A stretch of DNA of 64,000 nucleotides, from positions 226,275 through 290,274 of IMG/VR virus record IMGVR_UViG_3300032287_004484. One strand, 5' to 3'. Of the stretch, positions 3,915 through 62,116 are shown one piece after another; the first letter of the stretch is position 1, and the number at the start of each line of letters is the position of its first letter. The notes beneath the pieces are model-generated. The model searched no databases and was not told the origin of the DNA. It saw only the letters and a list, made by a program, of their open reading frames with translations. A program made the translations under genes and the position numbers.

Positions 3915-5033
3915 TTACTTATTTATTTTATTTATATAAACTTCATTTTTACCACTGCTCTTAATAAATGGAGCAACATATCTTAGGATTATTCTTTGTA
4001 CTGACTCAAATTTATTTATTTTATCATCATATTTAGGATACATTTTAGAAAGGTCTAATTGATTTTTTCTAGAAAATCCTGGTAAATTTTGCTGATCAGA
4101 ATACTTATAAAAGAAATCTTTTGAATTTTCATAAGCATCTTCGATTAATTCATCAATCATCCCTGGAAAATCAACATCTTTATTATCTGGAAAATTCTTC
4201 TTTGGAAATAATTTTAAAAAAGTATCGTATCCTTTAAAAGTATCTCTAAATTGTTTCCAAGTTATATCAGGATCTTTTTTTGTCCAATCATCTTTTTTTA
4301 ATCCATAAATAGATTTTTTTATATTATTTAAAATAACAGTTATATTTTTTTTATCACTATAACTTTTTGGTGTAGAAATAAAATTAGTTTGTATTGCTTG
4401 TAATTCTTTAAACATTTCAATTGGATCATATCCATAAGAATAATCAAAATCACCAAAAGTATCTTCATTGTCAAATTTATTAACTGAATTAATTTCAGAC
4501 ATAGCATGAAAAATATAATCGTGAAATAAACTATTAAATAAACCTTCTACGTTTTTATATGAATTTTGATATGTACTATATTTTTCAATAGTAAATTTTT
4601 CACTAATTTCAAAAGATAATTTTTCAAAACTCATTTTTTTTAAAATATCATTATCTTTAATAAAAGCAACAATTTTATTTTTTATTTCATCCCTAAATGA
4701 ATAATTTGGTTTTTTTAAAATATCATCTAAATTTATATTTAAATCTGATTTTAAAAAATGTTCAAATATAATTTGTAATTTTTGATATATTTTATACATT
4801 TCTTCATCTTTAGAAAAAACAAAAGCTTGCAATTGTAGATCATATATATTTTGATCAGAAATATTATTTTTTTTAAAAAACTCTTTAGCAATAGAAGTTA
4901 CATATTTAATTATACAAAAAAGATCAATATAATCAAATAAATTTTGTTTAATATCTAATTGTAAATCAAAATCATATAATTCTTTTATTTTTTCATCTAT
5001 TACTGCTTCAAAATAATTTATTAGTTTCATCAT
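3915..5033 (-). CDS. putative internal head (ejected) protein, paralog of 60584..62116
   Basis: N-terminus MKLINYFEAVIDE; ATCATAAAAATA at 5047-5058; shares HDxxxH, GYxP..ELxAxQ and TWKxFRxxF segments with 60584..62116. Confidence 0.55.
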   Translation of the reverse strand: MMKLINYFEAVIDEKIKELYDFDLQLDIKQNLFDYIDLFCIIKYVTSIAKEFFKKNNISDQNIYDLQLQAFVFSKDEEMYKIYQKLQIIFEHFLKSDLNINLDDILKKPNYSFRDEIKNKIVAFIKDNDILKKMSFEKLSFEISEKFTIEKYSTYQNSYKNVEGLFNSLFHDYIFHAMSEINSVNKFDNEDTFGDFDYSYGYDPIEMFKELQAIQTNFISTPKSYSDKKNITVILNNIKKSIYGLKKDDWTKKDPDITWKQFRDTFKGYDTFLKLFPKKNFPDNKDVDFPGMIDELIEDAYENSKDFFYKYSDQQNLPGFSRKNQLDLSKMYPKYDDKINKFESVQRIILRYVAPFIKSSGKNEVYINKINK

Positions 5034-5179
5034 TATATCCTAATAATATTTTTATGATCTTTTTTTATTACTATTTAAAAAAATCATAAACATTGTATAA
5101 ACATCTTGTATAAAATTACACTGAAGGTGAAGAAGAAAATTAGTACTGATTAGTTATATAAACCAAAAAATAAATTGAT

Positions 5180-5581
5180 ATGGAAAAAAAAGAAAAACAA
5201 AAAAAATTAAATATCTTAATCTTAAGTTTTTATAAAATTTTAAAACTTTCTTCTGATGATCAATTATTTTTACCATTAGAAGATGTTAAAGAAATTAATG
5301 ATGAAATGCGTGATAATTTAATGATGAAATTTTTAAATAATTATAACATAAATAAAAATTATTTATCAGATGATTTTTTTAAATATTTTATGAATAAAAA
5401 TTTATTAGATAATATTGATGATATGAATTATTTAGATTTTAATATTAAGGATAAAAGAATAGAAAAACTTTATAATAATTTTATACAGGATTTTAGTTTT
5501 TTTAAATATAAAAATAATGTTAAAGTATCAAATGATAAAAAGTTTTTAGCAGAATTAGAAAGAATAAGAAATTTACCTTAG
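5180..5581 (+). CDS. hypothetical protein
   Basis: 133-aa ORF, no recognised motif. Confidence 0.6.
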   Translation: MEKKEKQKKLNILILSFYKILKLSSDDQLFLPLEDVKEINDEMRDNLMMKFLNNYNINKNYLSDDFFKYFMNKNLLDNIDDMNYLDFNIKDKRIEKLYNNFIQDFSFFKYKNNVKVSNDKKFLAELERIRNLP

Positions 5582-5617
5582 AATAGACACTTTTTTATTT
5601 TTCTAATACAATAAAAA

Positions 5618-6412
5618 GTGGAAAAAATAAAATTCTCTAAGTCTAGGTATGGTTCTCAAAAAAATTGTTTAGGACAGTACTTTTATCAATATATTGAAAA
5701 GAGGTCTGTCCCTACTATTTTATGGCCAGGAACTTTAATAGGAACAGCTACTCACTTATTTATTGAGGAAAATTTAAATTCAATAGTTAAAGAAAAAGAT
5801 ATTAAAAAATTACCATTATTTGAAGAAACATTTTTTAAATGTAAAAAACAAGAAACATCTAATATCAAAGTTACTTACAGAACTCCAAAAAACTTTAATG
5901 AAAAAGAAGTTTTATCTAATAACAATAATTGGATAAAAGATATAATTAGATTTCTATTTTTATATTTACCTCCTGGTACAAAGATATTTGAAGAGGAAGT
6001 TGAGCAAGATATAGTAATAGATGATTTAATAATAAATGTTAAAGGTATTATTGATCTTCAAGTTAAAGATGAAGATAAATTATGGGTTTTTGATTTTAAA
6101 ACAACTAAAAATCCAAATTCTTGGATGTTTGTAAATTGGGAAAAAGACGCTCAAAGTCTTTCTTATTTGTGGTTAAAAAGAGAACAAAACCCATTAGGAT
6201 TTAATTATCTGATTTTTGATGCAGAAAATAAAATGATTTTTTCTAATAATATTGGATTTCAAGAAAATAGTAATGTAGAAAATAACTTAACTAATTTATT
6301 AAAAGATTTTATTAAAAATCATAAAGAATCTTTTGATAATAAAAATTGGAATCCAAGTCCAGATAATTGTAAATGGTGTCCATTTAAAGTTTTATGCCCA
6401 AGAAAACTTTAA
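5618..6412 (+). CDS. PD-(D/E)XK nuclease, RecB/Cas4-like
   Basis: GTATH, GIIDL...VFDFKTT, N-terminal Cys and C-terminal CKWCPFKVLC (Fe-S staple pattern). Confidence 0.85.
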   Translation: MEKIKFSKSRYGSQKNCLGQYFYQYIEKRSVPTILWPGTLIGTATHLFIEENLNSIVKEKDIKKLPLFEETFFKCKKQETSNIKVTYRTPKNFNEKEVLSNNNNWIKDIIRFLFLYLPPGTKIFEEEVEQDIVIDDLIINVKGIIDLQVKDEDKLWVFDFKTTKNPNSWMFVNWEKDAQSLSYLWLKREQNPLGFNYLIFDAENKMIFSNNIGFQENSNVENNLTNLLKDFIKNHKESFDNKNWNPSPDNCKWCPFKVLCPRKL

Positions 6413-6993
6413 AATCCTTCAATATCAAGTATTTGATATTTTTTATTTTTTTTAATTCGTTCTATTTCTGTTTTTAAATCATCAACAAAAATTATTTCAT
6501 ATCCTTGACTTTCCATAAATTTTATAGGATCATTTATTATTTCTTGACTTTTCCATTCAATTTTTTCTTTATCGTTTTTAAAATAAAAAAATTGATTAGA
6601 TTGTGTTAATTCTATAAATTTTTCTTTATCAAATTTAGTTAAATATGTTTCATGATTATTAATTTTTTTTTCATCTTCTTTATTAAAAACAATATAATCT
6701 TTTGTTTTTAAACGATATTTTAAAAATTGTAATCCCCTAGGTGCAGCATAAGGCGCTACCATTTTTTTTGTACCGACGAATAGACCTGTCGCCTTAGAAT
6801 AATCTTTTTCTGATTTTGATTTTGCTGAAATTGCATAAGAGTTAGTCCAATTACTATTATGGTAATATGTTTTCATTTTTTTATTAAAATCTATTATTCT
6901 TTTATCGTCTAATCTATAAACATATTTATTATCTTCATTCGATTCATTTATACATATTAAATCTTTTAATTCTTTTAAAAATTTCAAAATCAA
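6409..6993 (-). CDS. putative internal head protein, tandem paralog 1
   Basis: N-terminus LKFLKELKDLICINES; clearly similar to 7045..7614 (KYVYR, GLFxG, APYAxPRG). Confidence 0.65.
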   Translation of the reverse strand: MILKFLKELKDLICINESNEDNKYVYRLDDKRIIDFNKKMKTYYHNSNWTNSYAISAKSKSEKDYSKATGLFVGTKKMVAPYAAPRGLQFLKYRLKTKDYIVFNKEDEKKINNHETYLTKFDKEKFIELTQSNQFFYFKNDKEKIEWKSQEIINDPIKFMESQGYEIIFVDDLKTEIERIKKNKKYQILDIEGF

Positions 6994-7044
6994 TTACCTA
7001 TATTCTTTATTTTTATTAATAAATAAAAATCATATTTACAAAAA

Positions 7045-7614
7045 TTAAGGTTCCTCTTCCTCAACATTAATTCCACTTTCTTCAAGTCTATCTTTTTCAG
7101 TTTTTAAATCATCAACAAATTTAATTATATAACCTTGATTTTTCATAAATTCTATTGGATTAATTATTTTTTTTTGTTTCTCAAATTCTATTTTATTATT
7201 ATTTTTGTATGCAAAATATTCATTAGAAGTTTCTAATTTTTGAAAATTTTTTTTATTGAAAGCAGTTAAAAATGGTTGATGTGATTCAATCTTAGATTTA
7301 TCTTTTTTTCTAAAGATAATATAGTCTTTTTTATTATGATTATATTTAAGAAATGGAGTGCCTCTTGGAGAAGCATAAGGAGCAATGTCAAATAAATTTC
7401 CAGAAAATAAACCAGTGGATGTTTTAAAACCTTCTTTTGGTTTTGTATTATCTTGAAGAATTCCTGATTCTGTCCAATCATCTGTATGTTGATACGTATT
7501 TAAATTTAAATTGAAATTTTCTATTTTTTTATCATCAAATCTATAAACATATTTATTATCTTTATTTGATTCATTTATATATATTAAATCTTTTAATTTT
7601 TTTAAAAATTTCAA
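7045..7614 (-). CDS. putative internal head protein, tandem paralog 2
   Basis: N-terminus MKFLKKLKDLIYINES; paralog of 6409..6993. Confidence 0.65.
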   Translation of the reverse strand: MKFLKKLKDLIYINESNKDNKYVYRFDDKKIENFNLNLNTYQHTDDWTESGILQDNTKPKEGFKTSTGLFSGNLFDIAPYASPRGTPFLKYNHNKKDYIIFRKKDKSKIESHQPFLTAFNKKNFQKLETSNEYFAYKNNNKIEFEKQKKIINPIEFMKNQGYIIKFVDDLKTEKDRLEESGINVEEEEP

Positions 7615-7742
7615 AATTAATCCCTTATGTTAATATAATATTTTTACGGGTTTATTATAAAAAATACTTAAAAATAAACATCTTATTATAGAATAATATT
7701 AATTGAAAAAATTAATCAAGCTAAAAATTAAATATTAGTACA

Positions 7743-7824
7743 GGATCTATGGTGAAATTGGTAGACACAAGAGACTTAAAATCTCTCGCATAAAAGCGTG
7801 CAAGTTCGATTCTTGCTAGATCCA
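7743..7824 (+). tRNA. tRNA-Leu(TAA), CCA not encoded
   Basis: Acceptor GGATCTA/TAGATCC, D-loop TGGTAGAC, anticodon arm AGAGA-CT TAA AA-TCTCT, long variable arm, T-loop GTTCGAT. Confidence 0.95.
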
Positions 7825-7839
7825 TTATAAGGAGAAAAC

Positions 7840-8361
7840 ATGAGTCTTATAAAGTATGCTGAAGAAGAGATTAAGGCGGCTGGATTAAACGATCCAGACA
7901 GTGATTATAATGGCGATATTGGAAAAGCAGTATTAGAGTTAATACAAGTTTTTTCTAATCAAGGGCACTCTGGAATGAGTGCTTCTATTGTGAGAAATGT
8001 ATTTAATAAACTTGTAAAATACGAACCTTTGATTCCAATTACAGGTAATACAGAAGAGTGGATGGAAGTATCAGAAGGATTATTTCAAAATAAAAGACTA
8101 GGTGGTCTTTTTAAAGAAAATGGTAGAGTTTATTATTTAGATGCTATAATTTTTGTAGATGAGAATGGTAGTAGATTTTCTGGTATCTCTTATACTAAGA
8201 AAAAGAAAAAACAAATTACAAGTCGTCAGTTAGTTAAGACTTTTCCATTTATACCACAAACTTTTGAAATAGAAGTTTTTGATAAGAATGATGAGCGTTA
8301 TATAAAAAATAAAAAAGAACTAAAAAAAGTTTTTAAATACTATAACTACTATGAAACCTGA
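7840..8361 (+). CDS. conserved phage hypothetical protein
   Basis: MSLIKYAEEE...FSNQGHSGMSA motif; AGGAG SD. Confidence 0.75.
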   Translation: MSLIKYAEEEIKAAGLNDPDSDYNGDIGKAVLELIQVFSNQGHSGMSASIVRNVFNKLVKYEPLIPITGNTEEWMEVSEGLFQNKRLGGLFKENGRVYYLDAIIFVDENGSRFSGISYTKKKKKQITSRQLVKTFPFIPQTFEIEVFDKNDERYIKNKKELKKVFKYYNYYET

Positions 8362-8575
8362 TTATCAAAGATTATTTCTTACTGAGTTTGTTGCTCTAAT
8401 ACAACAGAAATATAAAATTGAATTTACTAAATTTTTCTATGAGGGAAAAAGAGAATATACGATTATGAAGCCTGAGTTTTTAATTCAAACTTACTCTGAC
8501 CAAGAGGCAGAGAAATATAATTGCGTTTTTGTTATCAACTTTTTCTATTTTAAAATTATTAGAAAACTCTATTAA
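8351..8575 (+). CDS. hypothetical protein
   Basis: 74-aa ORF overlapping neighbours in operon fashion. Confidence 0.5.
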   Translation: MKPDYQRLFLTEFVALIQQKYKIEFTKFFYEGKREYTIMKPEFLIQTYSDQEAEKYNCVFVINFFYFKIIRKLY

Positions 8576-8775
8576 TGAAAGTTTTAAAACTAAATGAATT
8601 AGACGATTCTTATTCTTTAGTAAAAGAAATATGTGATTATTGTAATGATGATATATTAACTGACAATATAAAAATTAATCATGTATTTACTCATAAGTCT
8701 ATTATTTCTCCAGGACAAAAAATAGAATTAGATATTTGTGAAAACTGCTTTCTCCAAAAATTTTTAAATTTCTAA
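8575..8775 (+). CDS. small protein with two CxxC motifs
   Basis: CDYC and CENC suggest a zinc ribbon. Confidence 0.55.
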   Translation: MKVLKLNELDDSYSLVKEICDYCNDDILTDNIKINHVFTHKSIISPGQKIELDICENCFLQKFLNF

Positions 8776-8816
8776 AAAATAGACACTTAAAAAACTATTT
8801 AATATAATAAATAAAA

Positions 8817-8890
8817 TGGCAAGTAGCTCAGTAGGTAGTAGCAAAGCACTGTTAATGCTTGGGTCGTAGGTTCGAATCCTACCTTGCCAG
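8817..8890 (+). tRNA. tRNA-Asn(GTT), CCA not encoded
   Basis: Acceptor TGGCAAG/CTTGCCA, anticodon arm AAGCA-CT GTT AA-TGCTT, T-arm GTAGG-TTCGAAT-CCTAC. Confidence 0.95.
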
Positions 8891-8954
8891 ATATTTAAAA
8901 AAAAATAAAACATATTAGAGATAAAAAAAACTTAAGTAATTATTTTATAAAAGC

Positions 8955-9158
8955 ATGAATAATTATACTTATAAAATTGAATATAATCGTTATAATTTAG
9001 GTGATTTTTTAGTAGAATTTATAGATGGTAAAAAAAATAATGTTTGGATATTAGAAGATTTATTTAATTCAAGTGAAGTACTTGGTACAAAGCGTTATGA
9101 TGCAACTTTAAGAGCAAAGGAATATATAAGAAAAAATCATCCTGAATTATTACTATGA
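8955..9158 (+). CDS. small accessory protein with C-terminal tag (HPELLL)
   Basis: 67 aa; similar in size and ending to 60015..60215. Confidence 0.7.
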   Translation: MNNYTYKIEYNRYNLGDFLVEFIDGKKNNVWILEDLFNSSEVLGTKRYDATLRAKEYIRKNHPELLL

Positions 9159-9360
9159 AATATATATATAAAATTGAAAGTGATGCTATTATTGAAATTG
9201 GGGAGATACAAATTCGTTGGCTTTTTAAAGAATTACAAAACAAATCATCATTAATAAAATTTAGAAAATTTTATTCTATTACAACAATAGAATCTTTTAA
9301 TAGAACACAGGATTTTTTTTAAATCATGTTATTAAAAATAATCCAGAATTAATCATATAA
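9155..9360 (+). pseudogene. disrupted small accessory gene ending NNPELII
   Basis: ATG overlaps the preceding stop; frame stops at TAA 9320-9322 just after a T8 run, while a family-type NNPELII* end follows at 9340-9360. Confidence 0.5.
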
Positions 9361-9453: not shown

Positions 9454-10092
9454 ATGAATAAATTACAAATACTTACAATTAAAGATTTAAATAAACAAGA
9501 TCTAAAGAATAAAGATTTTGATCTTTTAGATATTAAAAAATCCATTAATTATGCAGCAGCTAGAAAAATAAGAATTAAAGAATTAGAACAAGAGGTTATT
9601 AAAGATGCAGACTTAGCGTTAAAATATGCTAGTTCAGTTATACGTGGAGAATGGTTAGAGGGCGAAGATATTATTAGTTCAAACATTAATGCTTCAACAC
9701 GTTACGCTAAACTTGTAATAAGTAAAAGATTTACAAAAGCTGAACCTTTAATTTTACAAGAATGTTATCCTACGTTATATTATGTAAGAACGATAATAAA
9801 ACAAAGATTTCCAGAAGGTGAACAAATAATAGCATCTAAACCAGATAGTGCTTATATATATGCTAAAGAATATATTTTTAGCAGATGGCCAGAAGCAGAA
9901 AAAACTATTAGTACAAATGCAGAGTATTCCTTTCTTTATGCTGAGTTTATTAATGATAAATTTCCAATGGCTCATAAGACAATTTTTACATCTTCTAATT
10001 CTGAATGGAGAAATAAATATCTTAATCTTCTTGAAAAGCTACGAATTAATACTCAAGAAATTAAAGATGAATATATTGAATTTTTATTATGA
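9454..10092 (+). CDS. alpha-solenoid repeat protein (about 24-aa YA..VI.GRW.EGE..I repeat), tagged
   Basis: About six internal repeats; ends YIEFLL. Confidence 0.75.
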   Translation: MNKLQILTIKDLNKQDLKNKDFDLLDIKKSINYAAARKIRIKELEQEVIKDADLALKYASSVIRGEWLEGEDIISSNINASTRYAKLVISKRFTKAEPLILQECYPTLYYVRTIIKQRFPEGEQIIASKPDSAYIYAKEYIFSRWPEAEKTISTNAEYSFLYAEFINDKFPMAHKTIFTSSNSEWRNKYLNLLEKLRINTQEIKDEYIEFLL

Positions 10093-31785: not shown

Positions 31786-32979
31786 TTATTTCTTACTCCA
31801 TTTGTCAGGCGAATCACCTTCTGAGTGATAATCACCATATTTATCATATCCACCTCGCCAAGTACCATCTTTCCAAACACCATTCTTCCATGTTCCTTTA
31901 TACCAAAGACCGTTTTCCCAAATACCATCTTCCCAAATTCCTTTAAACCAAGTACCATACTCCCAAACACCATTCTTCCATGTTCCTTTATGCCAAGTAC
32001 CATCTTCCCAAGTACCACCCCACCAAATACCAACCCACCAAGTACCGTCTTTCCAAACACCATCCTTCCACGTTCCTTTATGCCAAGTACCATCTTCCCA
32101 TGTTCCTTTCCACCAAATGCCATTTTCCCATTGACCACCTTCCCAGGTGCCATTATACCAATCACCTTTTTCCCAATTTATTTTTATTTCGTGTTGATCA
32201 TGTAAATATGTTGTATAAACAGCATCTTTTGATATATTTTTTTTGATAAGTTCATCATAGTTTTTAATGTATAATGATAATTGTTCTTGTTTTGATGTGT
32301 CAGAGTTTTGAGAAAAAACTTTTTTAAGGTAATTTATATCTTTATTAGCTGACCTCCAAGATTTACCTTCATTATCACTATAAGAAAGAGGAATTATAAT
32401 ATCATTATTATATGATACTAAAACTAAACCATCATGTCTACCAGTAAAAACTATCCCATCAATTATTTTTATTAATAACTTTTTATATACATTATAAACA
32501 TAAGAAGCTATATCAGATGAATAATTTGATGTTTTCTGTAATTCTAATATTTTTTTTTCATCTATTTGTTTATACTTATCATATTTATCAAAATCAAAAT
32601 ATTTCATTTGATCTATAATAAACATATCTTTTGATGTTTTTATTTTTTTACTAACAGATGATTTTAAAAAATTATCATAATCAAAAAACATAAATCTATT
32701 TAAAGAATTAATCATAAACTTAACAATTATATCACCATAATTTGATTTCATTCTTTGTCTAAATTGAGATTCTAATTCATAGGTACTATAAAATCCTTTT
32801 CCATAAGTATCTCCAACACCTGTCCTAAAACCTGTATTATAAATTTTATTTATAAGATCTTCTGTTTTAGTTCTATGATAAACAGTAGCTTTATTACTAT
32901 AAATACTTTCAAAAATAATATTATTTAAGTTTTTAGTAAATTTTTTATTAGTCATTTTTTTAATCCTTATATATTCCAT
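31786..32979 (-). CDS. putative ADP-ribosyltransferase-fold protein with GxWxx pentapeptide repeats (paralog 1)
   Basis: VYHRT...GF...YGKGFYST; about 21 GxWxx repeats; probable start MTNKKF at 32955 with IFE|S. Confidence 0.6.
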   Translation of the reverse strand: MEYIRIKKMTNKKFTKNLNNIIFESIYSNKATVYHRTKTEDLINKIYNTGFRTGVGDTYGKGFYSTYELESQFRQRMKSNYGDIIVKFMINSLNRFMFFDYDNFLKSSVSKKIKTSKDMFIIDQMKYFDFDKYDKYKQIDEKKILELQKTSNYSSDIASYVYNVYKKLLIKIIDGIVFTGRHDGLVLVSYNNDIIIPLSYSDNEGKSWRSANKDINYLKKVFSQNSDTSKQEQLSLYIKNYDELIKKNISKDAVYTTYLHDQHEIKINWEKGDWYNGTWEGGQWENGIWWKGTWEDGTWHKGTWKDGVWKDGTWWVGIWWGGTWEDGTWHKGTWKNGVWEYGTWFKGIWEDGIWENGLWYKGTWKNGVWKDGTWRGGYDKYGDYHSEGDSPDKWSKK

Positions 32980-34130
32980 TTATCTGGTGAATCACCTTGT
33001 GGATGAAATCTTCCAAATTTATCTTTTCCTCCATGCCAAGTACCACCTAACCAAGTGCCACCTTTCCAAGTTCCATCTAACCAATCACCGTTTTTCCAAA
33101 TGGCGTTATTCCAAGTACCTTTTTCCCAAATGCCTTTTTCCCAAATTGGATTATCATCATCATTCCAAAATATACTTCCAAATGTTCCATCCTTCCATGT
33201 TCCATCTTCCCAAGTTCCACCTTCAAAATAACCTTTTAACCATGTTCCTTTTTTCCAAGTACCATTTTCCCATGTACCATTATACCAAACTCCACTATAC
33301 CAAATCCCATTTTCCCAAGTAAAATAATTTCTATATTTTATATCATAATTTTCTATATCGTCTATTTCGTAATCAGCATCACTAGATATTTTAGCATCCT
33401 CAATCCAATGTTTTATTTTAGTGTCTTTTTTATATTTAACTTTAACGTCGTCAGTATATTGAGAGAATACTTTTTTTAAATAGTTTATATCTTTATTTGG
33501 TTTAATCCAGTCTTTTCCATCATTTAAAGAAAAAGATAATGGGATAATTAAATCAGTATTATAACAAACAATGTTTTTGCCTTCATCATCAGATGTAAAA
33601 AATACTCCATCAATATATCTTTTAATTTTAAAATGACCACCAAAATAGCTTAATATTTGATTAAAAATATCAGAACTATATTTTGATTCTCGAAATTCAA
33701 AATCTTCTAATGATTGTTCTGGTTCTAAAAATTGAAAATTAAAGTGTTTTAATTGATCAATAATAAAATTTTTTTTCTTTGATTTTAATTTTTTAAAAAG
33801 ATTAGTTTTTTTAAATTCTTTATAATCTAAAACTAAAAAATTATTTATAGATTTAATCATCATTTTAACTATAATCGAACCATATTTGTGTTCCATATAA
33901 TCTTTATTTCGACCTATTTGATGTTTTAAATCGTATGTAGCATACATACCTATTCCATAATTAGATGTATCTTTAGGCTTGTATCCATCTTTAAAAATAA
34001 GATTTATTAAATCTTTTTCTTTTGTTCGATGATATACAGTAGCTTTTGCACCATAAATATCTTCTAAAAGAATTTCTTTTAAACTTTCACTAAATAATTT
34101 TTCTTTATATAAATCCATTTTACTTCTCAC
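32967..34130 (-). CDS. putative ADP-ribosyltransferase-fold protein with GxWxx repeats (paralog 2)
   Basis: VYHRT...YGIGMYAT; same repeat and GDSPDKW end; ATCATAAAAATA at 34141-34152. Confidence 0.6.
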   Translation of the reverse strand: MRSKMDLYKEKLFSESLKEILLEDIYGAKATVYHRTKEKDLINLIFKDGYKPKDTSNYGIGMYATYDLKHQIGRNKDYMEHKYGSIIVKMMIKSINNFLVLDYKEFKKTNLFKKLKSKKKNFIIDQLKHFNFQFLEPEQSLEDFEFRESKYSSDIFNQILSYFGGHFKIKRYIDGVFFTSDDEGKNIVCYNTDLIIPLSFSLNDGKDWIKPNKDINYLKKVFSQYTDDVKVKYKKDTKIKHWIEDAKISSDADYEIDDIENYDIKYRNYFTWENGIWYSGVWYNGTWENGTWKKGTWLKGYFEGGTWEDGTWKDGTFGSIFWNDDDNPIWEKGIWEKGTWNNAIWKNGDWLDGTWKGGTWLGGTWHGGKDKFGRFHPQGDSPDKWNI

Positions 34131-34230
34131 TCAATTTAATTATTTTTATGATTAAATGTTTTATGTATTAATATTTTAATTTTAGACACTTATTATTTTT
34201 AAATAATATAATTAATTAAGGGAAAAATAT

Positions 34231-36122: not shown

Positions 36123-37880
36123 TTATTTTTTTAAAAAATTTCTCGTTGATTCTATACTTGCTTTTATATCATCTAATCCAACGATGTCAGGATTTAATTC
36201 TTCTATTGATAATTCTAAGAAATCTAAATAATCTAATCTAGTTTTTACAGGTGTTTTTGAAACTTTTATTTTATTAATAAAACTTCTTAAATTATTAATT
36301 GTTTGATAAATAACATTCTGTGAAGTAGTTCCACTTTTTATGAAATCTATTTTTTTAATAAAATCACTAAATACATTAGATTCTCTATCTATTTCTTCTT
36401 GTTCTAATTCAATTAATTCATCTAATTTATCTTCATCTTCTTGTTCTTTTTTTAATAATTTATTAAAGATTTGTTCTTCTTCTTTTTCTTTAATTTTTGA
36501 TGGACTTAATACAGAAGTTTGAGTTTTACTAATATCTTTTTTTGCTTTTTCAATTTCATCTGGAACTAAAGTTCCTTTTTCTATTTGTGAAAGCACAGAA
36601 TTTATTTTTTGTAAAATTTTCTCTGGATTTTTAGATGTATTTTCTTTTTTTATTTTTGAGATAATAGAAGGAGGTAAAAGTGATAAAAAAGTTTTTGTAA
36701 GTATTTTTTCATAAGTTGCATCTGAGACGTCATTGTTATCAAGATTATTTTTTCTTTCTTTAAAGATAGAATAGAACATTTTATTTTCGTCACTTAAATT
36801 ATAGTATCCAGTATTTAAAGATGAACTTTTTATTGAATCAAATACACCTTTAACTTTATTCCATCCGTCAATAATTGCTGGTTTATATTCTTCCCATTTA
36901 TTAATTCTATCTTGTGGTTTAAGATTATCCCAACCTATACTTTTTTTATCAGCTAATGAAACTTTTATATTAGAACTAGGAATCGTCATGGTTGATGCAG
37001 TGCTTAAAGTTTTAGATTTGGTAATACCATAAGTAGATTGGAGTTTATCTTTTCTTTCTTGTTCTTTCGTATCTTTATCTATTTTTAATAAATATTCTTT
37101 TTGAGCATTTAATAATTTATTAAGTTGTTCATTTTCATTTTTTTTCTTTATAAGTTCGTTTAACATGTTAGACTTAAAAGCTGAAACGCTATATTTATTC
37201 CCGCCTGTTTTATCTTTTATTATTTCTCTAGCCATTTCAATCATAGATTGATTATTAAGCTTTTTTTCTAAAGAGCGAGCTTCTATAATATTTTCTCGTA
37301 TGTTTGTTATTGTTTGTCTTTCAAATTTTTTATTTTTTTCTAATTCTTCTCGTTTTTTATCTTCTGATAAATTACTTGATAAAATGTCTTTTTCTCTTTT
37401 ACTATATCTTTCTTTTTCAATTTCAATTTTATTTTCATATCGTTCAATTTCTTTTTCTTGAAATTCTAAATTTTCAAATTCTTTATCTTCTAAACGTTTC
37501 ATATAACTTTGTTTTTCTTTTTTTGTTAATATAGGGTTTCTTATAACCATATTAAAAAAAGCTGATGGAAAATCTTTTTCTCTTTTAGTCAATTCTTCTG
37601 CATCTAAAAGATTTTTTTCGTTTATAATAACGTCATTCTGTGCGAAAGACATGTTAAAAGTTTGAATATGAATTGCATCATTAAAATTTACTTGTTTATC
37701 ATCTAAAAACATCTTCTCGAAATCTTCTATTTCTTTTTTCGCTTTTTTACCATCGGTACTATTAGGTTCTTTTAAAAAAGAATTAAAATCAATTTCATTA
37801 AATTGATCAAATATTTTTTTTGCCTCATCTATTGATTCATATATGTATATAATGTTTTTTAGTAGCGATGAAAATTTCAT
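36123..37880 (-). CDS. large coiled-coil putative internal head protein
   Basis: MKFSSLLKNIIYIYE|S N-terminus; charged heptad regions. Confidence 0.6.
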   Translation of the reverse strand: MKFSSLLKNIIYIYESIDEAKKIFDQFNEIDFNSFLKEPNSTDGKKAKKEIEDFEKMFLDDKQVNFNDAIHIQTFNMSFAQNDVIINEKNLLDAEELTKREKDFPSAFFNMVIRNPILTKKEKQSYMKRLEDKEFENLEFQEKEIERYENKIEIEKERYSKREKDILSSNLSEDKKREELEKNKKFERQTITNIRENIIEARSLEKKLNNQSMIEMAREIIKDKTGGNKYSVSAFKSNMLNELIKKKNENEQLNKLLNAQKEYLLKIDKDTKEQERKDKLQSTYGITKSKTLSTASTMTIPSSNIKVSLADKKSIGWDNLKPQDRINKWEEYKPAIIDGWNKVKGVFDSIKSSSLNTGYYNLSDENKMFYSIFKERKNNLDNNDVSDATYEKILTKTFLSLLPPSIISKIKKENTSKNPEKILQKINSVLSQIEKGTLVPDEIEKAKKDISKTQTSVLSPSKIKEKEEEQIFNKLLKKEQEDEDKLDELIELEQEEIDRESNVFSDFIKKIDFIKSGTTSQNVIYQTINNLRSFINKIKVSKTPVKTRLDYLDFLELSIEELNPDIVGLDDIKASIESTRNFLKK

Positions 37881-37998
37881 TGATAATGATCCTCTTGTTA
37901 TTTATTTTTAAGTGTTATTAGTAAATATATGATTTTTTTTTAGGTTTCAACACTAGAATAGTAATTTATTATAATATAGAAAAGTAAAAAAATAAATT

Positions 37999-39922: not shown

Positions 39923-40857
39923 TCTTCTAATCCATAAAATGGAGCGTTATCTTGAAATATATCTTTAAACATTCCATATTCCATTTTCATTATTTCATCT
40001 TTATCATACATTTCACTTCCATCATCAGAATTATAAGATGAAGAGAAAGCATTATCAACAATTTCTTTTAATTTATCTTTACTAATGCCAGCAATTTGTA
40101 TTGCGTTATATTCTAAAGATTCTTTATCATCATACTCTTTTTTTGATATAATTATTATATCTTCTTTTTTATCTACATTATATCCATTAAAAGGATTAGA
40201 ATTTACTTCGTCTAAAAAATAACCTATTGACATAGTTCTAGCACGTATAGGAGAAATTTTATTTTGACTCATAATAGAAGATATTTTATCTTCTGAAAAT
40301 TTTAGTTTATCTTTTATTACTGATAAAAATTTATCGTTGATTGATGCTTCTATTTTTTTTACTTCTTTCTTATTTTTTTGTTTTTTTATTGAGCTTTCAC
40401 TTTCTAATCTTTTTAAAATATCATCTTTATAAAGTTTAACATATTTTTCTGGAGTAATTAAACGATAATTAAAAATAAATTCGATAGGATCTCCATTAAA
40501 AAATCCTGTAATTATCTTTCCAAGATTAACATCTTCGATAATTTTTTCTTGAAACTTTTTTAAACTTTCTTTATTAATCTTAAAAAGATTCATGATAGCA
40601 ATATCTGTTTTATTAAAATTTGCAATATTTTTCTTAGTATCATCATCTATGTTACTATTAGATTTTAATTTATTTAATAAATCTCCTAATTTTTGTTTTT
40701 TAGCATAATCATAACTTATTTCTTCAATTATATATTTTTCTTGATTTATTAAATAACAAAAAACATCAGGCTTCTTATAAGAATTTAAAATACTTCTTTT
40801 TTCAGAATCACTATATCCTTCTTGAATGATTGAAATGTATTTTTTAAACAGCGACAT
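39919..40857 (-). CDS. putative internal head protein
   Basis: MSLFKKYISIIQE|G; ATCATAAAAATA at 40875-40886. Confidence 0.6.
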   Translation of the reverse strand: MSLFKKYISIIQEGYSDSEKRSILNSYKKPDVFCYLINQEKYIIEEISYDYAKKQKLGDLLNKLKSNSNIDDDTKKNIANFNKTDIAIMNLFKINKESLKKFQEKIIEDVNLGKIITGFFNGDPIEFIFNYRLITPEKYVKLYKDDILKRLESESSIKKQKNKKEVKKIEASINDKFLSVIKDKLKFSEDKISSIMSQNKISPIRARTMSIGYFLDEVNSNPFNGYNVDKKEDIIIISKKEYDDKESLEYNAIQIAGISKDKLKEIVDNAFSSSYNSDDGSEMYDKDEIMKMEYGMFKDIFQDNAPFYGLED

Positions 40858-40919
40858 ATTTACCTCTTTTTCTTTATTTTTATGATAAAAAGATAAATAT
40901 GTAGTATTTTTTTAAAAAA

Positions 40920-44335: not shown

Positions 44336-44887
44336 TTATTTAGTTTCTTCTGGAGGAGTCTCTTCAGCAGGTGTAGATTCAACCTTTTCTTCTGGAGCCA
44401 TTTCAGATGCAAAATCATCAGATCCAGATTGTCCATCCTTTTTACCAGCAATAACATATGCTCCTCGAATTGTTTTAGAATCAAGATAATATTTTTGATT
44501 ATTAAAAGTTAAACTTTTTTTATCATCGCTAATATTAATCTCTTTTTTATTGTTTTTTTGATAAATTACATTATTTATAATTGGGTAATAAGAATTATTA
44601 ACCTCAAGATATAATTTTTCTTCATCTTTTGGAAGATCTTCTAAAGTAGATTCTTTAATTTTTCTTGAATAAAAAAATATTTTAATTGGTTTATTTAAAG
44701 CTTTTGGTTCTATATATCCAATATCTTTAATATTAGGAAAAAGACCTTTATTAATAAATGATTTATATTGACCATTGATACGAATACTATTTATAGGATA
44801 AAATGTATTTTCTTTTTTATCGTAAAAAACTTTTTCTAAAAATTCAAACAATAAAATTTTGTTTTCAAAGTATTTTATTAAATTCAT
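44336..44887 (-). CDS. putative internal head protein
   Basis: MNLIKYFENKILLFE N-terminus; acidic/proline tail. Confidence 0.5.
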   Translation of the reverse strand: MNLIKYFENKILLFEFLEKVFYDKKENTFYPINSIRINGQYKSFINKGLFPNIKDIGYIEPKALNKPIKIFFYSRKIKESTLEDLPKDEEKLYLEVNNSYYPIINNVIYQKNNKKEINISDDKKSLTFNNQKYYLDSKTIRGAYVIAGKKDGQSGSDDFASEMAPEEKVESTPAEETPPEETK

Positions 44888-44962
44888 GTTAAAGATTACT
44901 TAATATATATTTTATAATTTTATAACATTTTTATTTATTTTTTATGATTTTATTTTTAGACA

Positions 44963-56800: not shown

Positions 56801-56810
56801 GGAGATACAA

Positions 56811-57182: not shown

Positions 57183-57221
57183 AAAGATTTTTTAAAAGAT
57201 TAACTAATTAGACTGTTTACT

Positions 57222-57259
57222 TTTTAGGTTTAAACACTTATTATAAATTGAATTATAAT
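57222..57259 (+). promoter_or_regulatory. type example of the repeated promoter
   Basis: TTTTAGGTT-TAAACA-17 nt-TATAAT. Confidence 0.8.
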
Positions 57260-57281
57260 ATAATATATAGGATAAAATAAT

Positions 57282-58175
57282 ATGAATAAATATAACTATA
57301 AATACGATCACATAATAAAAATTGATGACCAAATTTTAAAAGAAGATTTTTACGAAATTGTAAGAAAGCATAAAGTTAATAGAAAAAGAGATTTAAATTT
57401 AGAGGAAAGAATTTTAAAGAGTCAAAATCCTTTATTAGCTGTTTTCTATGCTAGAGAAGTTGTAATGGATAGATGGATAGAAGGCGAAGATATAATTTTT
57501 AACTTTCCTTCTGATCAATCTATTTATTTTTATTTAACTTTTTTGATAGAAAATAAAGTTAGAGATCTTGAAGATTTATTTCCAAAATTAGAAAAATGTA
57601 TGGTAGAGTTTAAGGATTTTATGGCTATTAGATATTATATCTCTAGTGTAATTAAAAGAAGATGGAAAGAAGGTGAAGACGCTATTATTGAATGTAAATC
57701 TCTTAACGATATTAATTGGTATTCTAAATATTATATTAAAGGTAGATGGAAAGAGGGAGAACAAGTTTTTTTAGAAGAAATAACAAATATAAACTTTTCT
57801 AGCCATTTGCACTTCCACCTTGTTTACCAATTATCTTATTATATAGATAAAATCGCTAAATGTAAAATTGACGATATTGATAAAGAGATTATTAAAAATA
57901 TGAAATATTTTTGCGAGAAATATCCTCATGTAAATATTTTTAGATATATAAATGGAGCACATCCAAAAGGTTGGGAAGAAGCAGAAGAGTTTATTGTTCT
58001 TGATGCTAACCTTAGTGTTATGTATGCAATGAAAATTATAAAAAGACCTTTTGTAAAAGCACATCAAAATATCTTTAGTTCTAAAACAGATAAAAGAATT
58101 ATAAATCGCTATACAAATTTTCTCAATAAATTAAGTAAAAAGAAAACAGTAAACTTCTCAGAGTTCTTAATTTAA
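57282..58175 (+). CDS. long solenoid-repeat family protein (FSEFLI)
   Basis: About eight repeats (VMDRWIEGE, IKRRWKEGE, IKGRWKEGE). Confidence 0.75.
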   Translation: MNKYNYKYDHIIKIDDQILKEDFYEIVRKHKVNRKRDLNLEERILKSQNPLLAVFYAREVVMDRWIEGEDIIFNFPSDQSIYFYLTFLIENKVRDLEDLFPKLEKCMVEFKDFMAIRYYISSVIKRRWKEGEDAIIECKSLNDINWYSKYYIKGRWKEGEQVFLEEITNINFSSHLHFHLVYQLSYYIDKIAKCKIDDIDKEIIKNMKYFCEKYPHVNIFRYINGAHPKGWEEAEEFIVLDANLSVMYAMKIIKRPFVKAHQNIFSSKTDKRIINRYTNFLNKLSKKKTVNFSEFLI

Positions 58176-58177
58176 AA

Positions 58178-58708
58178 ATGAAAACTTTATATTTATTAGA
58201 AAATAAAAAGATAAAAGAGAAATATAATAATTTTCTAATTAAAAATAATGTTTTTTATTCTTATCAATATTATCTTGGATCAGGAGATGAAGGAGACGCT
58301 TTTATGGTTTCTGATTCTGAAATAAGAGGAGTTATAAAATTAACAACTAGAAGATTAGAATATAAGATTTCTAAAAAATTAATTAAGAATCAATATCTTA
58401 ATCTTTGTACAGTATATGATTGTAATATTTTAAGTCCTAATGAATTATATGTTATTTATAAAAAGTTTTATTTTGTTAATTCTATAACATCTGATTTAGT
58501 TGATTTTGCTTTAAAAAATAAAGATTTAAATAATTTTGGACTTATTGGTTTTGAATTAAAAAAGATTAAAAGTCAATTAAAAGAATTTGGATTAAGTGAT
58601 GGAGGTGATTTATGGGGTGGTAATGTAGGATGGGATAAAAATAAATTAGTTCACTTTGATATAGATGAAACTGTTTATGGAACGTATAAAGAAAGTTTTT
58701 TAGAATAA
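58178..58708 (+). CDS. minimal protein-kinase-like-fold enzyme
   Basis: LGSGDEG (Gly loop), VIK, DLWGGNV (catalytic loop), FDID (metal binding). Confidence 0.65.
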   Translation: MKTLYLLENKKIKEKYNNFLIKNNVFYSYQYYLGSGDEGDAFMVSDSEIRGVIKLTTRRLEYKISKKLIKNQYLNLCTVYDCNILSPNELYVIYKKFYFVNSITSDLVDFALKNKDLNNFGLIGFELKKIKSQLKEFGLSDGGDLWGGNVGWDKNKLVHFDIDETVYGTYKESFLE

Positions 58709-58753
58709 ACACTTTTATATTTTGTATATATATTATATATAAAGGAATATTAA

Positions 58754-58945
58754 ATGACAAAAAAAGAAGCAACTAGAATTTTAAACATTAGATTAGAAGC
58801 TCTTAATGAAGCAATTAAAAGAAAGGCAATTAAAACTGATATTACTGGTAAAATAATTGATCAATCAGTTTTTGATTACCTTAATGAATTAGAGGAAAGA
58901 AGAAAAGCACCTCCAATAAATTGGATTAAAAGAAATGAATTTTAA
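58754..58945 (+). CDS. excisionase-like HTH protein, tandem paralog 1
   Basis: TKKEATRILNI...LEERR. Confidence 0.65.
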   Translation: MTKKEATRILNIRLEALNEAIKRKAIKTDITGKIIDQSVFDYLNELEERRKAPPINWIKRNEF

Positions 58946-58961
58946 AAGGATAAAAAAATAA

Positions 58962-59180
58962 ATGGAAACAACAATAGAAAAACAAACAATAACTAAAAAA
59001 GAGGCATGTGATATTTTACAAATTAAAAAACACACATTAAATAATCTTATTAAAAGTAAAATAATATCTTCTTTTAACGAAGAAGTTATTTTTTCTTCTG
59101 TTTTTAAATATAAAAAAGAATTAGAAGAAAGAAGATCAATTAACAAACCAATGTGGATAAATAGAGGCGGATATGGTTGA
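58962..59180 (+). CDS. excisionase-like HTH protein, tandem paralog 2
   Basis: TKKEACDILQI...LEERR. Confidence 0.65.
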   Translation: METTIEKQTITKKEACDILQIKKHTLNNLIKSKIISSFNEEVIFSSVFKYKKELEERRSINKPMWINRGGYG

Positions 59181-59508
59181 ATCTAAAAAAGAAACTTACT
59201 TATATATGGGAATATCGTTAGATAAATTTTCTAATGATCCAACAGATAAAATTTCCATGATAGACTTTTATAATTCTTTTAATCAACAAATATATTCTCA
59301 TTGTTCTACAAGTTTTAAAAATAAAGAAAGATTCACGTTTCAAAAACTTGGAGATAACTTTACTTTTGAAGAATGGAGAACTGGACATGATATTATTATT
59401 CCTATTACAAAAGAAAAATTTGATATGATAAAACAGATTAACATTCTTAATCATAAAAGTTTAAAAAAGTTTTTAAGATCGTTTAGTTTTGAGGAGTACA
59501 TTATATAA
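59173..59508 (+). CDS. small tagged accessory protein (FEEYII)
   Basis: C-terminal tag. Confidence 0.7.
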   Translation: MVESKKETYLYMGISLDKFSNDPTDKISMIDFYNSFNQQIYSHCSTSFKNKERFTFQKLGDNFTFEEWRTGHDIIIPITKEKFDMIKQINILNHKSLKKFLRSFSFEEYII

Positions 59509-60018
59509 ATGATAAAAATATTAATTGCTAATACACATTCTAAAATAGATTTTGAATCAGTCGATAAATCAGAAAAGAAAGAATTTATTAAAATGCTGAA
59601 AGAAAAATTTACAGTTAGAAATCCATCGCTAGAAAGAAACCCTATGGTAATAAGAGGACTAATGAGTGCTGATCATTGTTTTTACGACGTTGAAAACTCT
59701 ATTCTTCCAACTGGTTTAGTTCCACATCTTAGAATTTATTCTAAACAAAATAATTTTCAAATTGAAATTAAAGACTTTAGAAAATTTCCAAAACAAAACC
59801 AAAACATATTAGATGGGATCAACGATAAACAAATTAAAATGGGAATTCACGAAGCAAGGGATTACCAAATAGATGCTCTAGCTGATTTAGTTAAATATCG
59901 TGGAGGAATAATGGAGGGAGGAACTGGAATGGGTAAATGTCTTGGTAAATCAACAGAGATTGAAATAGAAGTTGATGATGACTTTTATTCATTTCTAATA
60001 AAACATAATTTTATATGA
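59509..60018 (+). CDS. uvsW: UvsW-like SF2 helicase N-fragment fused to a 26-aa split-intein IntN
   Basis: ARDYQ (Q motif), GGTGMGK then CLGKSTEIEIEV...; Cys1 at 59938. Confidence 0.9.
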   Translation: MIKILIANTHSKIDFESVDKSEKKEFIKMLKEKFTVRNPSLERNPMVIRGLMSADHCFYDVENSILPTGLVPHLRIYSKQNNFQIEIKDFRKFPKQNQNILDGINDKQIKMGIHEARDYQIDALADLVKYRGGIMEGGTGMGKCLGKSTEIEIEVDDDFYSFLIKHNFI

Positions 60019-60215
60019 AAAATCAATATACAATAGAATATGATAAGATGATTAAAAATTACCAAGTCAGTTGTGTAGGAAAATTTAACTTTAGTGCATC
60101 GCTAGGATATTTAAAAAATCTTGATAACCAAAGCATGTGGAAAGAAAAAAAATTAGAATATTATTTTGAACTTCTTGATTGGGTAGAAAAAGAACACCCA
60201 GAGTTATTAATATGA
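60015..60215 (+). CDS. small tagged protein (HPELLI) between the helicase halves
   Basis: ATGA overlap with the IntN stop. Confidence 0.7.
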   Translation: MKNQYTIEYDKMIKNYQVSCVGKFNFSASLGYLKNLDNQSMWKEKKLEYYFELLDWVEKEHPELLI

Positions 60216-60550
60216 ATGATTCAGAATGGGATGAAATGATTGCTTGGTGTCCAACACAATTAAGTAAAAGAGTTTATGTCGAAGGAATAGAGTTAATTCT
60301 TTATTTAAGATGGAGATGGAATGATCCGTTCACTTATAACATTTATATTGAAGAAGATAAAAAAGAATTAGAAGAACTTCTAAAAATAGGGATGTTTCAT
60401 TATGATTTATTTAATAAGTATAATCGTTGGTATTCACAAAAAGATTTTGATAAAGATAAAATAGAAAGGGATGCAGAAGATATTTGGTATAACTTCGAGA
60501 AGTCAAGGATAGAAAAAATTTTAAAAGATAATCCGCATTTAATAATTTAA
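60212..60550 (+). CDS. accessory protein (NPHLII) between the helicase halves
   Basis: WCPTQ...YLRWRW motif; start 60212. Confidence 0.65.
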   Translation: MNDSEWDEMIAWCPTQLSKRVYVEGIELILYLRWRWNDPFTYNIYIEEDKKELEELLKIGMFHYDLFNKYNRWYSQKDFDKDKIERDAEDIWYNFEKSRIEKILKDNPHLII

Positions 60551-60583
60551 AGAATTTTTATTTTTAAATCATAAAAATAAATT

Positions 60584-62116
60584 ATGAAATTTATTGAAAA
60601 ATTAAATCTTCTTGTTGAAGGTATAGGTTCAACGATTAATTTTAATTCCACTCAAATTGGTCTTAATATAGGAAAAGATGATTCATTTTTAAATTTTATT
60701 GATAATGCTTATTTAATGAAACAGATAAAATTTTTTATTAACGAAGAGATAGATAGATTTAATAAAATTTTTCCTAACAATAAAAAACAAAAAATTAAAA
60801 TTGAATTTAATCAAACGAAGGAAAAAAATGAATCGTTAGAAATGGTTGAAAAATTTATAGAAGACGATAAAAATGATAAAGCAGCGCTTCACAATTTTAA
60901 AATAAAATATATTAATCATATAGTAGAATGGTTTAAGGATGATAAAAATTTAAATAAAGATTATAAAAAGCATTTTGAAAAAGAATTACAAAATTCTAAT
61001 TTTTGGGCCTTTTTTAAAAGTGAAAGAGGCGAACTTTATTTAAGCGATGTAACTACGCTTAATAATATCAATGCAGAAATAATTCATGATTTAGTTTTAC
61101 ATCTTTTTGCTAATCAAGAAGATATGTTTTATTTTTCAATAAGTGATAATGGATATGGATTTAATGATCCTAGCGGTTATTCACCAGAAAGTTTATTAAA
61201 TGAACTATATGCTTTACAGTCTGATCATATGATTTTTTATTATAGTTATGAAGTTCAAAAACCTTTTATAGACGTTTTTTATAAAGATCTTTCTGAGATT
61301 CAATCAAAAAATCAATTAGAAACAGTTCTTAATTTCTTTAAAGATGAAAAAATAAAATATTTAATACAAAGACAGTTATTTAATGAAAAAGTTGTTTACG
61401 GAAAACTCTTAATTGATATTTTTTCAGTTGTTGAAAAACATAAACAATATTTTCAAAACTCATATTCTTTTTTACAAAAACATAAAGATTCTCAAGGTAA
61501 AATAGTTAATTTTAAAAGATATAGTTATCCATTTATTCAAAACGTTATTTCTTCAATTCAAAAACGTCAAAGTAAAATTCCAACGTGGAAAGATTTTAGA
61601 ACATACTTTAACGATTACCCAGCAATACAAATATTATTTAAAAAAGATAAATATCTAGATGATAAAAAAATTAGTGATCATCCTGAACTTAATGATATTA
61701 ATCAAATATTTTATAAAGCATTAGATTCTGGTCAAAGCTTAATGAAAACAAGTTCTACATCTGGTAATACTAAAAGAAAAGAAGAGATAGTAGAACTTCC
61801 TAATTTTTTAAAGAGGATGAGAGGTAAAAGTAAAAACGACATTGAAGCAGCTATGTTGAAAATACCAGATAAAGAAAAAAGAGAAAGATTATTTAAAAAA
61901 TATATTCAATTTCAAAAATATACTAATCAATATGAAATAGGTCAAATAGGAAAACAATTAGTTGGTAAAAAAGAAGTTTATAATTTTCAAAATACAATAG
62001 ATGTTATATTAGATAAAATTTTTAAATTAGTTAGAAGCAATAAATTTACTAATAATAAAATTTATTATGATATGATAGAGAAAAAAATAAAAATAGAAAA
62101 GGAAAATAATCCTTAA
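60584..62116 (+). CDS. putative internal head protein between the helicase halves
   Basis: MKFIEKLNLLVE|G; ATCATAAAAATA at 60568-60579; paralog of 3915..5033. Confidence 0.6.
   Translation: MKFIEKLNLLVEGIGSTINFNSTQIGLNIGKDDSFLNFIDNAYLMKQIKFFINEEIDRFNKIFPNNKKQKIKIEFNQTKEKNESLEMVEKFIEDDKNDKAALHNFKIKYINHIVEWFKDDKNLNKDYKKHFEKELQNSNFWAFFKSERGELYLSDVTTLNNINAEIIHDLVLHLFANQEDMFYFSISDNGYGFNDPSGYSPESLLNELYALQSDHMIFYYSYEVQKPFIDVFYKDLSEIQSKNQLETVLNFFKDEKIKYLIQRQLFNEKVVYGKLLIDIFSVVEKHKQYFQNSYSFLQKHKDSQGKIVNFKRYSYPFIQNVISSIQKRQSKIPTWKDFRTYFNDYPAIQILFKKDKYLDDKKISDHPELNDINQIFYKALDSGQSLMKTSSTSGNTKRKEEIVELPNFLKRMRGKSKNDIEAAMLKIPDKEKRERLFKKYIQFQKYTNQYEIGQIGKQLVGKKEVYNFQNTIDVILDKIFKLVRSNKFTNNKIYYDMIEKKIKIEKENNP

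Follow-up and report, generated by a model that had tools for sequence, protein, structure and literature searches.

A stretch of 64,000 nucleotides (nt), hereafter the window, forms the final 64 kb of the 290,274-bp single-contig virus record IMGVR_UViG_3300032287_004484, which carries direct terminal repeats, has a G+C content of 25.6% and is the complete 290-kb genome of a freshwater phage that is uncultured and a distant relative of T4. Here we report that this genome holds a class of about 30 genes, recognised by sequence, whose mostly unrelated products begin with a similar short leader closing in a glutamate; eight or nine of ten candidates in the window belong to it, together with about 20 genes elsewhere in the genome. 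By comparison with T4 it is likely that the leader acts as a T4-style capsid-targeting sequence (CTS) and is removed by proteolysis, while late timing and ejection of these proteins are proposed with less confidence. The original prediction, made from the window alone, had described about ten such proteins as packaged, ejected effectors under a variant T4 late promoter, and is partly supported: the case for one or two of the ten is doubtful, and it is the loose rule used to group them that fails, not the class itself.

The gene set was a crude call of 430 predicted proteins genome-wide, and window genes are named here by their first coordinate (Table 1). All ten N-termini were re-read and close as described in IDE, INE/S (twice), IFE/S, LLE/D, IYE/S, IQE/G, LFE, LLE/N and LVE/G (a slash follows the closing glutamate), with likely true gene starts at 5030, 6987, 32955 and 34118 instead of 5033, 6993, 32979 and 34130. 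The membership rule [I/L]-x-E does not by itself exceed chance, since [ILV]-x-E occurs at residues 6-30 of 176 of the 430 proteins (41%), at 1.26 times its internal density, and a pattern so common near the N-termini of this proteome is uninformative alone. The class is defined by a more specific leader. Its clearest form is the 13-mer M-[KS]-x-F-x-x-Y-L-x-I-I-Q-E, found in about 14 genes genome-wide and in the window in 39919 alone; the broader consensus is M-[KS]-x-F-x-x-Y-L-[E/x]-I-I-x-E, with amphipathic leaders of 12-19 residues, and the remaining window genes carry 12- or 15-residue MKF..L..PhiPhixE variants. Among 38 leaders the best-conserved positions are F4 (24/38), Y7 (29/38) and L8 (25/38), and a glutamate stands at position 9 or 13.

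Several counts place this leader specifically at N-termini. The pattern Phi-Phi-x-E-[SGNDA] has 46 N-terminal sites where about 21 are expected (2.2-fold) and peaks sharply at E10-14; control versions that close in K, Q or N instead of E show no enrichment (about 1.0). The register Phi4..[YFL]7-Phi8 occurs 26 times against 7.4 expected in the genome, and 12 times against 2.3 in a 52-kb relative. A leave-one-out position matrix gave eight N-terminal sites scoring at least 8, with 0.5 expected, and picked up new members absent from its training set; 39919 scored 11.4, and no internal site in the proteome reached 10. Overall, the specific leader is enriched 3.5- to 16-fold at N-termini.

The leader behaves as a portable module. 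Most of the proteins that share it are not linked as paralogues in an all-against-all BLAST comparison, and the alignment of 39919 with the gene at genome 129042 is limited to residues 1-13, so plain paralogy was rejected. The shared leaders differ by synonymous codons, with the residues kept. In the 52-kb relative, a fragment designated G001 whose capsid protein is 86-88% identical, about 20 of about 70 open reading frames (ORFs) start with MKxFxxYLE or similar, and most of these genes are without a homologue in the present genome. A 142/399-kb phage with about 45% protein identity has at least six MNLFKKY(Y/F) genes within 21 kb, and a 328-kb phage has the 60584 leader unchanged. In this 328-kb relative the 60584 homologue has a TnpB / IS605 OrfB-like gene (L061:1749-2939) immediately upstream.

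In four cargo families the conservation of the leader equals or exceeds that of the body. The 60584 family keeps M1, K2, L7, E12, G13, I14 and G15 invariant at about 30% overall identity, the leader being its best-conserved part, and in the 36123 family it is the most conserved segment, kept in homologues at 31-38% identity. M1, L3, Y6 and E8 are invariant among homologues of 3915. For the 32967/31786 family, 290 metagenomic homologues were found with leaders of 9 to about 25 residues; among 43 homologues with varying leaders, at least 90% have the boundary glutamate, and one homologue has the near-T4 10-mer leader MKSFKQFVKE. The leader of 7045 and that of the unrelated 36123 family have M1, K2, F3, L7, E15 and S16 in common. 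Judged from these alignments, the leader and its closing glutamate are under purifying selection. Related-locus searches seeded with 60584 and with 39919 returned no relatives.

The genome encodes the head machinery that a T4-type mechanism would use. A prohead protease of the Peptidase_S77 / gp21 family is encoded at genome 186573-187226 (PF03420, 70 bits, above the cut-off, E 2e-20; phrog_207, E 5e-35); it is 33% identical to T4 gp21, and the blocks GE(L/M)xHP and G(V/I)SSR are common to both. A gp23-like major capsid protein is encoded at genome 191651-193249, in which LISE61/S is located in the segment corresponding to T4 LTE65/A, and a gp20-like portal is also encoded; these three proteins support a distant T4-type phage. 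Genes neighbouring the protease have leader-type N-termini too, for example MKINLFEQLLFICE/S, MKDNKQLEIILE/N and MLKDFKFYLEMVE. No match to 15 kb of the window was found among GenBank phages by megablast. A homing-endonuclease-like gene (genome 193347-194555) directly follows the major capsid gene, as T4 segD is placed after gene 23, and homologues of T4 gp47 (SbcD-like nuclease) and of the UvsW helicase are encoded at window 2843-3856(-) and 62158-63675(+).

The second component of the system is a promoter-like motif with the core TAAAWATA, often extended to CATAAAWATA or to the 12-mer ATCATAAAAATA, and lying on the sense strand of the downstream gene. All four copies of ATCATAAAAATA and the three TAAAAATA cores reported in the window are where the original prediction placed them. 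In 15 kb of upstream intergenic DNA, with expectations from Markov models trained on the same DNA, CATAAAWATA occurs 13 times against 0.6-0.9 expected (about 15-fold), TAAAAATA 51 times against 15-22, and the 12-mer five times against 0.05; the four copies in the window compare with 0.34 expected, and none of 100 shuffles reached four. Eighteen of the 33 genomic copies of CATAAAWATA are intergenic, intergenic DNA being 8% of the genome, and of the 12 that lie no more than 25 nt from a start, about nine stand before leader genes. In the rest of the genome, beyond the window, leader and motif co-occur with an odds ratio of 4-8 (p 2e-5 to 2e-4, with crude leader patterns). The motif also stands upstream of the portal gene, a baseplate-wedge gene, head-cluster genes and several very large genes, most large genes being unannotated; a PHROG scan of ten motif-preceded genes gave baseplate wedge and exonuclease as the only names.

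The spacing between motif and start codon is bimodal, being either 13-26 nt with a Shine-Dalgarno sequence, as in most canonical leader genes, or exactly 4 nt without one. The 4-nt spike comprises nine genes, including those behind window 60568-60583 and genome 146042-146057, 117182-117195 and 280342-280355. Relatives have the same arrangement in front of homologues that are 30-45% identical, and the identical 12-mer with 4-nt spacing precedes the 30%-identical 60584 homologue on the 328-kb contig. Because the close spacing without a Shine-Dalgarno sequence is conserved, this class of genes suggests leaderless mRNAs. A scan of IMG/VR for the 12-mer followed by ATGAAATTT was discarded, its 22 matches all being chance and none having a leader-like ORF.

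Another motif, TTTTT[AG]GGTTTA[AT][AT]CA[CT]TTA, with about 35 good genomic copies, is followed at about 15 nt by a TATAAT-like box; the small genes that it precedes, by 33-85 nt, are mostly on the + strand. The motif recurs in the 328-kb relative, almost never precedes leader genes and is mutually exclusive with CATAAAWATA. This sigma-70-like motif probably represents an early or middle promoter class. The leader genes are mostly antisense among genes of the early type.

These observations can be joined in a mechanism whose first three steps, targeting, cleavage and packaging, are drawn by analogy with T4. The leader would bind the prohead scaffolding core, whereby the protein would be carried inside; the gp21-family protease would then cut the leader off after a glutamate; and the mature proteins would remain with the packaged DNA, some as parts of the core or scaffold and some possibly delivered into the host. 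Transcription of the cargo genes would start from a -10-like element of their own, (C)ATAAAWATA, a putative relative of the T4 late promoter TATAAATA, acting either from 13-26 nt upstream of a gene with a Shine-Dalgarno sequence or from 4 nt before the ATG to give a leaderless mRNA. The leader agrees with this scheme at the positions that matter in T4, where, as a review reports, residues 4 and 7 of the CTS determine targeting and residues 8 and 10 processing (PMC9026906): its hydrophobic positions 4, 7 and 8 correspond to those of the T4 CTS MKTYQEFIAE. The proposal of a T4-like CTS class thus stands as regards a real, conserved and cargo-independent leader resembling the T4 CTS at its critical positions and accompanied by a gp21-family protease.

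A number of results weigh against the scheme, and they bear first on the promoter. No gp55 homologue was found: phrog_234 and phrog_12791 gave no match at E up to 1, phmmer with T4 gp55 returned nothing in the genome, and the sole clear sigma gene is an ordinary sigma-70-family one at genome 51664-52431 (PF04542, 7e-11; phrog_351). The expectation that a genome-wide scan would place the motif before structural genes was borne out for the portal, the baseplate wedge and the head cluster, but no copy lies within 70 nt of the capsid gene, and before the scaffold gene there is only TAAAAAATA, a variant longer by one base. Three of the five 12-mer-preceded genes (3915, 60584 and genome 144713-146041) are distant paralogues of one another, so that the five genome-wide pairs of 12-mer and gene represent three independent families. 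The sequencing runs that hold the sequence, as found by a sequencing-run search, are nine DNA metagenomes, some labelled freshwater, and no RNA run. On the side of the leader, the cleavage site cannot be fixed, because [ILV]-x-E is common by chance in such an AT-rich proteome. In 3915 the family-invariant glutamate is E8 in Y-[FL]-E and not, as had been proposed, that of the closing IDE; many G001 leaders read Y-L-E9, with tyrosine instead of leucine or isoleucine at P3; and leader proteins are barely more basic than the rest (p 0.048). A basic 'internal protein' character was accordingly dropped as a class feature: few members are small and basic, and leader-bearing cargo genes reach 656 amino acids (aa).

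The alternative that survives best concerns the motif alone. (C)ATAAAWATA may not be a late promoter and may instead mark another temporal class, an A-rich translation enhancer or an RNA-processing site, as the missing gp55 homologue, the capsid gene and the DNA-only runs would allow; moreover, if transcription began at the same distance as in T4, genes of the 4-nt class would have their start point at the ATG or within it. We consider this unlikely, given that the motif is gene-oriented, intergenic and exclusive of the sigma-70-like early motif, precedes the portal, baseplate-wedge and head-cluster genes, and is one position off T4 TATAAATA, which itself occurs in exact form at the same place in G001. 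The variant late promoter had been proposed correctly in so far as the motif is real, leader-linked and conserved in relatives; its assignment to a T4-like late system is the part left without a gp55 homologue. Genome 116542-117141 encodes a weak region-2-like sigma candidate that is gp55-sized and directly upstream of a motif-preceded gene; compared with gp55, it showed no similarity.

Distinctly less probable is a real leader with another purpose, such as an uncleaved helix for assembly or oligomerisation, a signal for another virion part or for a membrane, or a degradation tag. With cleavage and a place in the capsid as predictions, this explanation would accommodate the modelling of the leader as low-confidence short helices and the varying position of the conserved glutamate (E8, E9, E12, E13, E15, E19); yet the glutamate always ends the leader immediately before the conserved body, positions 4, 7 and 8 agree with the T4 determinants, and head-cluster proteins around the S77 protease have the leader. 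A secretion signal peptide was rejected, the leaders being too short and charged (K, E, D and Q throughout) and without a hydrophobic core. It is still more improbable that a promoter and leader have spread as a mobile cassette, or that initiation on leaderless mRNA constrains the 5' coding sequence, with no role in protein targeting. The 12-mer retained by the paralogues 3915, 60584 and genome 144713, the frequency of tandem paralogues and the nine genes with 4-nt spacing fit such an origin, but shared leaders vary synonymously around fixed residues, most canonical leaders have the normal spacing and Shine-Dalgarno sequence, and the leader outlasts recognisable body similarity by far. Compositional chance, by which a genome of 25.6% G+C would yield N-termini rich in K, I, L, F and E and functionless A/T octamers, can draw on the 41% of proteins with [ILV]-x-E, on the 345 genomic copies of TAAAAATA and on other A-rich octamers also common upstream of genes, and may account for 58178 and perhaps 44336, but is scarcely credible for the class as a whole and largely refuted by the N-terminal enrichment, by a motif 2- to 100-fold above Markov models of the same intergenic DNA, and by the co-occurrence of leader and motif, both kept in relatives at 30-45% protein identity. 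T4-style targeting with leader removal is the explanation to be preferred.

The cargo itself has few known relatives: the ten window proteins gave no usable Pfam or PHROG family, and in the protein atlas 3915 and 36123 have low-confidence models and no lead. The 32967/31786 family is the most informative. In the model of 32967, the N-terminal domain has a predicted local distance difference test (pLDDT) score of 86 and the leader forms short low-confidence helices. The structural matches listed for this model include PARPs, the catalytic domains of diphtheria and cholix toxins, ParT, MbcT and NatT, and H30, R31, T32 and Y59 are invariant or nearly so in the family. The model is suggestive, but no proof, of an ADP-ribosyltransferase (ART)-like fold in the N-terminal domain. 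Against that assignment stand match scores of Z 5.6-7.0 over about 120 residues, below the confidence mark of 8, the absence of a conserved catalytic glutamate (the third catalytic residue) identified in the family, and the lack of a Pfam match. The sole listed match outside the ART superfamily, which is also the best match, is a cyanophage pre-ejectosome chain. The C-terminal halves (31786-32500 and 32967-33400) consist of the pentapeptide G-[TVI]-W-x-x repeated about 25 times in tandem, a feature conserved among the metagenomic homologues.

Table 1. Leader genes, promoter-like motifs and second-motif copies in the window (window coordinates)
Feature	Position	Strand	Remarks
Cargo gene, 371 aa	3915-5030	-	Leader MKLINYFE..IDE at 4992-5030
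12-mer ATCATAAAAATA	5047-5058	-	16 nt before ATG at 5030; AGGA Shine-Dalgarno between
Cargo gene, TTG start	6409-6987	-	15-residue leader MKFLKELKDLICINE/S at 6943-6987; paralogue of 7045
TAAAAATA core	7008-7015	-	Upstream of 6409-6987 (start first given as 6993)
Cargo gene, TTG start	7045-7614	-	Leader MKFLKKLKDLIYINE/S at 7570-7614; leave-one-out matrix score 7.9
TAAAAATA core	7639-7646	-	Upstream of 7045-7614
Cargo gene, putative ART-like N-terminal domain, G-x-W-x-x repeats	31786-32955	-	Leader MTNKKFTKNLNNIIFE/S at 32908-32955
Cargo gene, putative ART-like fold at residues 21-205, then Trp pentapeptide repeats	32967-34118	-	19-residue leader ending LLE/D at 34062-34118
12-mer	34141-34152	-	22 nt before ATG at 34118
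Cargo gene, 585 aa	36123-37880	-	Leader MKFSSLLKNIIYIYE/S at 37836-37880
TAAAAATA core	37903-37910	-	22 nt upstream of 37880
Cargo gene, 312 aa	39919-40857	-	Canonical 13-residue leader MSLFKKYISIIQE/G at 40819-40857
12-mer	40875-40886	-	17 nt before ATG; AGAGG Shine-Dalgarno between
Possible member, 183 aa	44336-44887	-	MNLIKYFENKILLFE at 44843-44887; matrix score 2.6
MKTLYLLE/N gene	58178-58708	+	No promoter motif; starts 2 nt after stop codon of upstream gene
12-mer	60568-60579	+	Exactly 4 nt before ATG, no Shine-Dalgarno; candidate leaderless-mRNA promoter
Cargo gene, 510 aa	60584-62116	+	12-residue leader MKFIEKLNLLVE/GIGS at 60584-60619
Second-motif starts, near	15501, 23138, 24662, 42033, 54686	-	
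Second-motif starts, near	9385, 10174, 15549, 16879, 18910, 24692, 30044, 38332, 42061, 45291, 53403, 54723, 57224		

Membership is uneven among the window genes. Gene 31786 is without a promoter of its own and directly downstream of 32967. For 44336 the nearest TAAAAATA lies 63 nt upstream, at 44951-44958, and no relatives were found among the loci retrieved; by its sequence it is a possible member, an intermediate case. Gene 58178, with no motif and no support from relatives, is probably a chance match and not a member. The window also holds tRNA-Leu(UAA) and tRNA-Asn(GUU) genes at 7743-7824 and 8817-8890, and small proteins form three paralogue families with 15-16 members apiece, encoded mostly in the terminal regions of the genome, with window members including 8955-9158, 9454-10092 and 57282-58175.

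The most likely overall account is that a known mechanism, that of the T4 internal proteins, is extended here, in a previously unstudied clade of phages, to a much larger set of cargo proteins. A wider reading is tentative and on balance doubtful: a freshwater clade of jumbo T4-like phages might devote about 7% of its genes to CTS-tagged, fast-turnover cargo, packaged and delivered with the DNA as a large arsenal for host takeover or anti-defence that includes PARP-like ARTs, and made partly from leaderless late mRNAs through a TAAAWATA promoter read by a factor unrelated to gp55. If the main account is correct, the rule of leader plus motif would identify capsid cargo across a clade of uncultured jumbo phages. 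Dozens of orphan proteins could then be listed as likely to act within the head or when infection has just begun, and these would be prime candidates for anti-defence and host-takeover functions. The T4 CTS would then prove to be of great age and transferable well outside the T-even group, a point relevant to the engineering of protein delivery, and there would be a late-promoter variant without a recognisable gp55, whose fixed spacing to the ATG suggests leaderless late mRNAs.

The closest known system is the T4 CTS of IPI, IPII, IPIII and Alt, which the prohead protease gp21 cleaves off. In the T4 record, ipII and ipIII start with MKTYQEFIAE/A, ipI with MKTFKEF... and alt with MELITELFDE/D, while gp68 starts with MLLIPETHELVLE/N and gp22 with MLKEQLIAE/A. 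In both phages unrelated proteins start with a short leader that is hydrophobic or aromatic at positions 4 and 7, aliphatic at position 8 and closed by a glutamate, and both genomes encode a gp21-family protease; the leaders here are of 12-19 residues in several sub-classes, whereas those of T4 have 10, and about 30 cargo genes compare with four or five, none of them homologous to the T4 internal proteins or Alt. T4 Alt is a CTS-bearing ART of the R-S-E clade, and one cargo family here is predicted to be ART-like, although it resembles PARP/diphtheria-toxin-type and RES-domain folds. The T4 late promoter TATAAATA, served by gp55, gp33 and gp45, is likewise an A/T-only 8-bp -10-like element without a -35 element, close to the gene and before virion genes (here the portal, baseplate-wedge and head-cluster genes), from which TAAAAATA or TAAATATA differs at one position (3 or 5); here there is a conserved C-A (or A-T-C-A) before the core, a class with fixed 4-nt ATG spacing and no Shine-Dalgarno sequence, and no gp55 homologue was found.

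The T-even internal proteins are diverse except for their conserved CTS (PMC3012670), by means of which T4-like phages may load a variety of proteins (PMC9026906), and the fast turnover of cargo behind a conserved leader at these variable loci is matched here, as seen in the comparison with G001 (PMC3012670, PMC9026906). The present system differs in its larger scale, in the dispersal of its genes through early-gene regions, and in proteins of up to 656 aa, few of which are small and basic. Jumbo phages such as phiKZ, 201phi2-1 and SPN3US (gp175 or gp245 cleavage) also combine propeptides on inner-body and ejection proteins with a gp21-like protease. In these phages many head proteins are processed after a glutamate by a diverged protease of this kind (PMC9026906, PMC5694885), and the propeptides are long, with sites reported to have very few determinants besides the glutamate (PMC9026906). 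In the genome described here, by contrast, the protease and capsid protein match the T4 families directly, and the leaders are of the T4-like decapeptide style.

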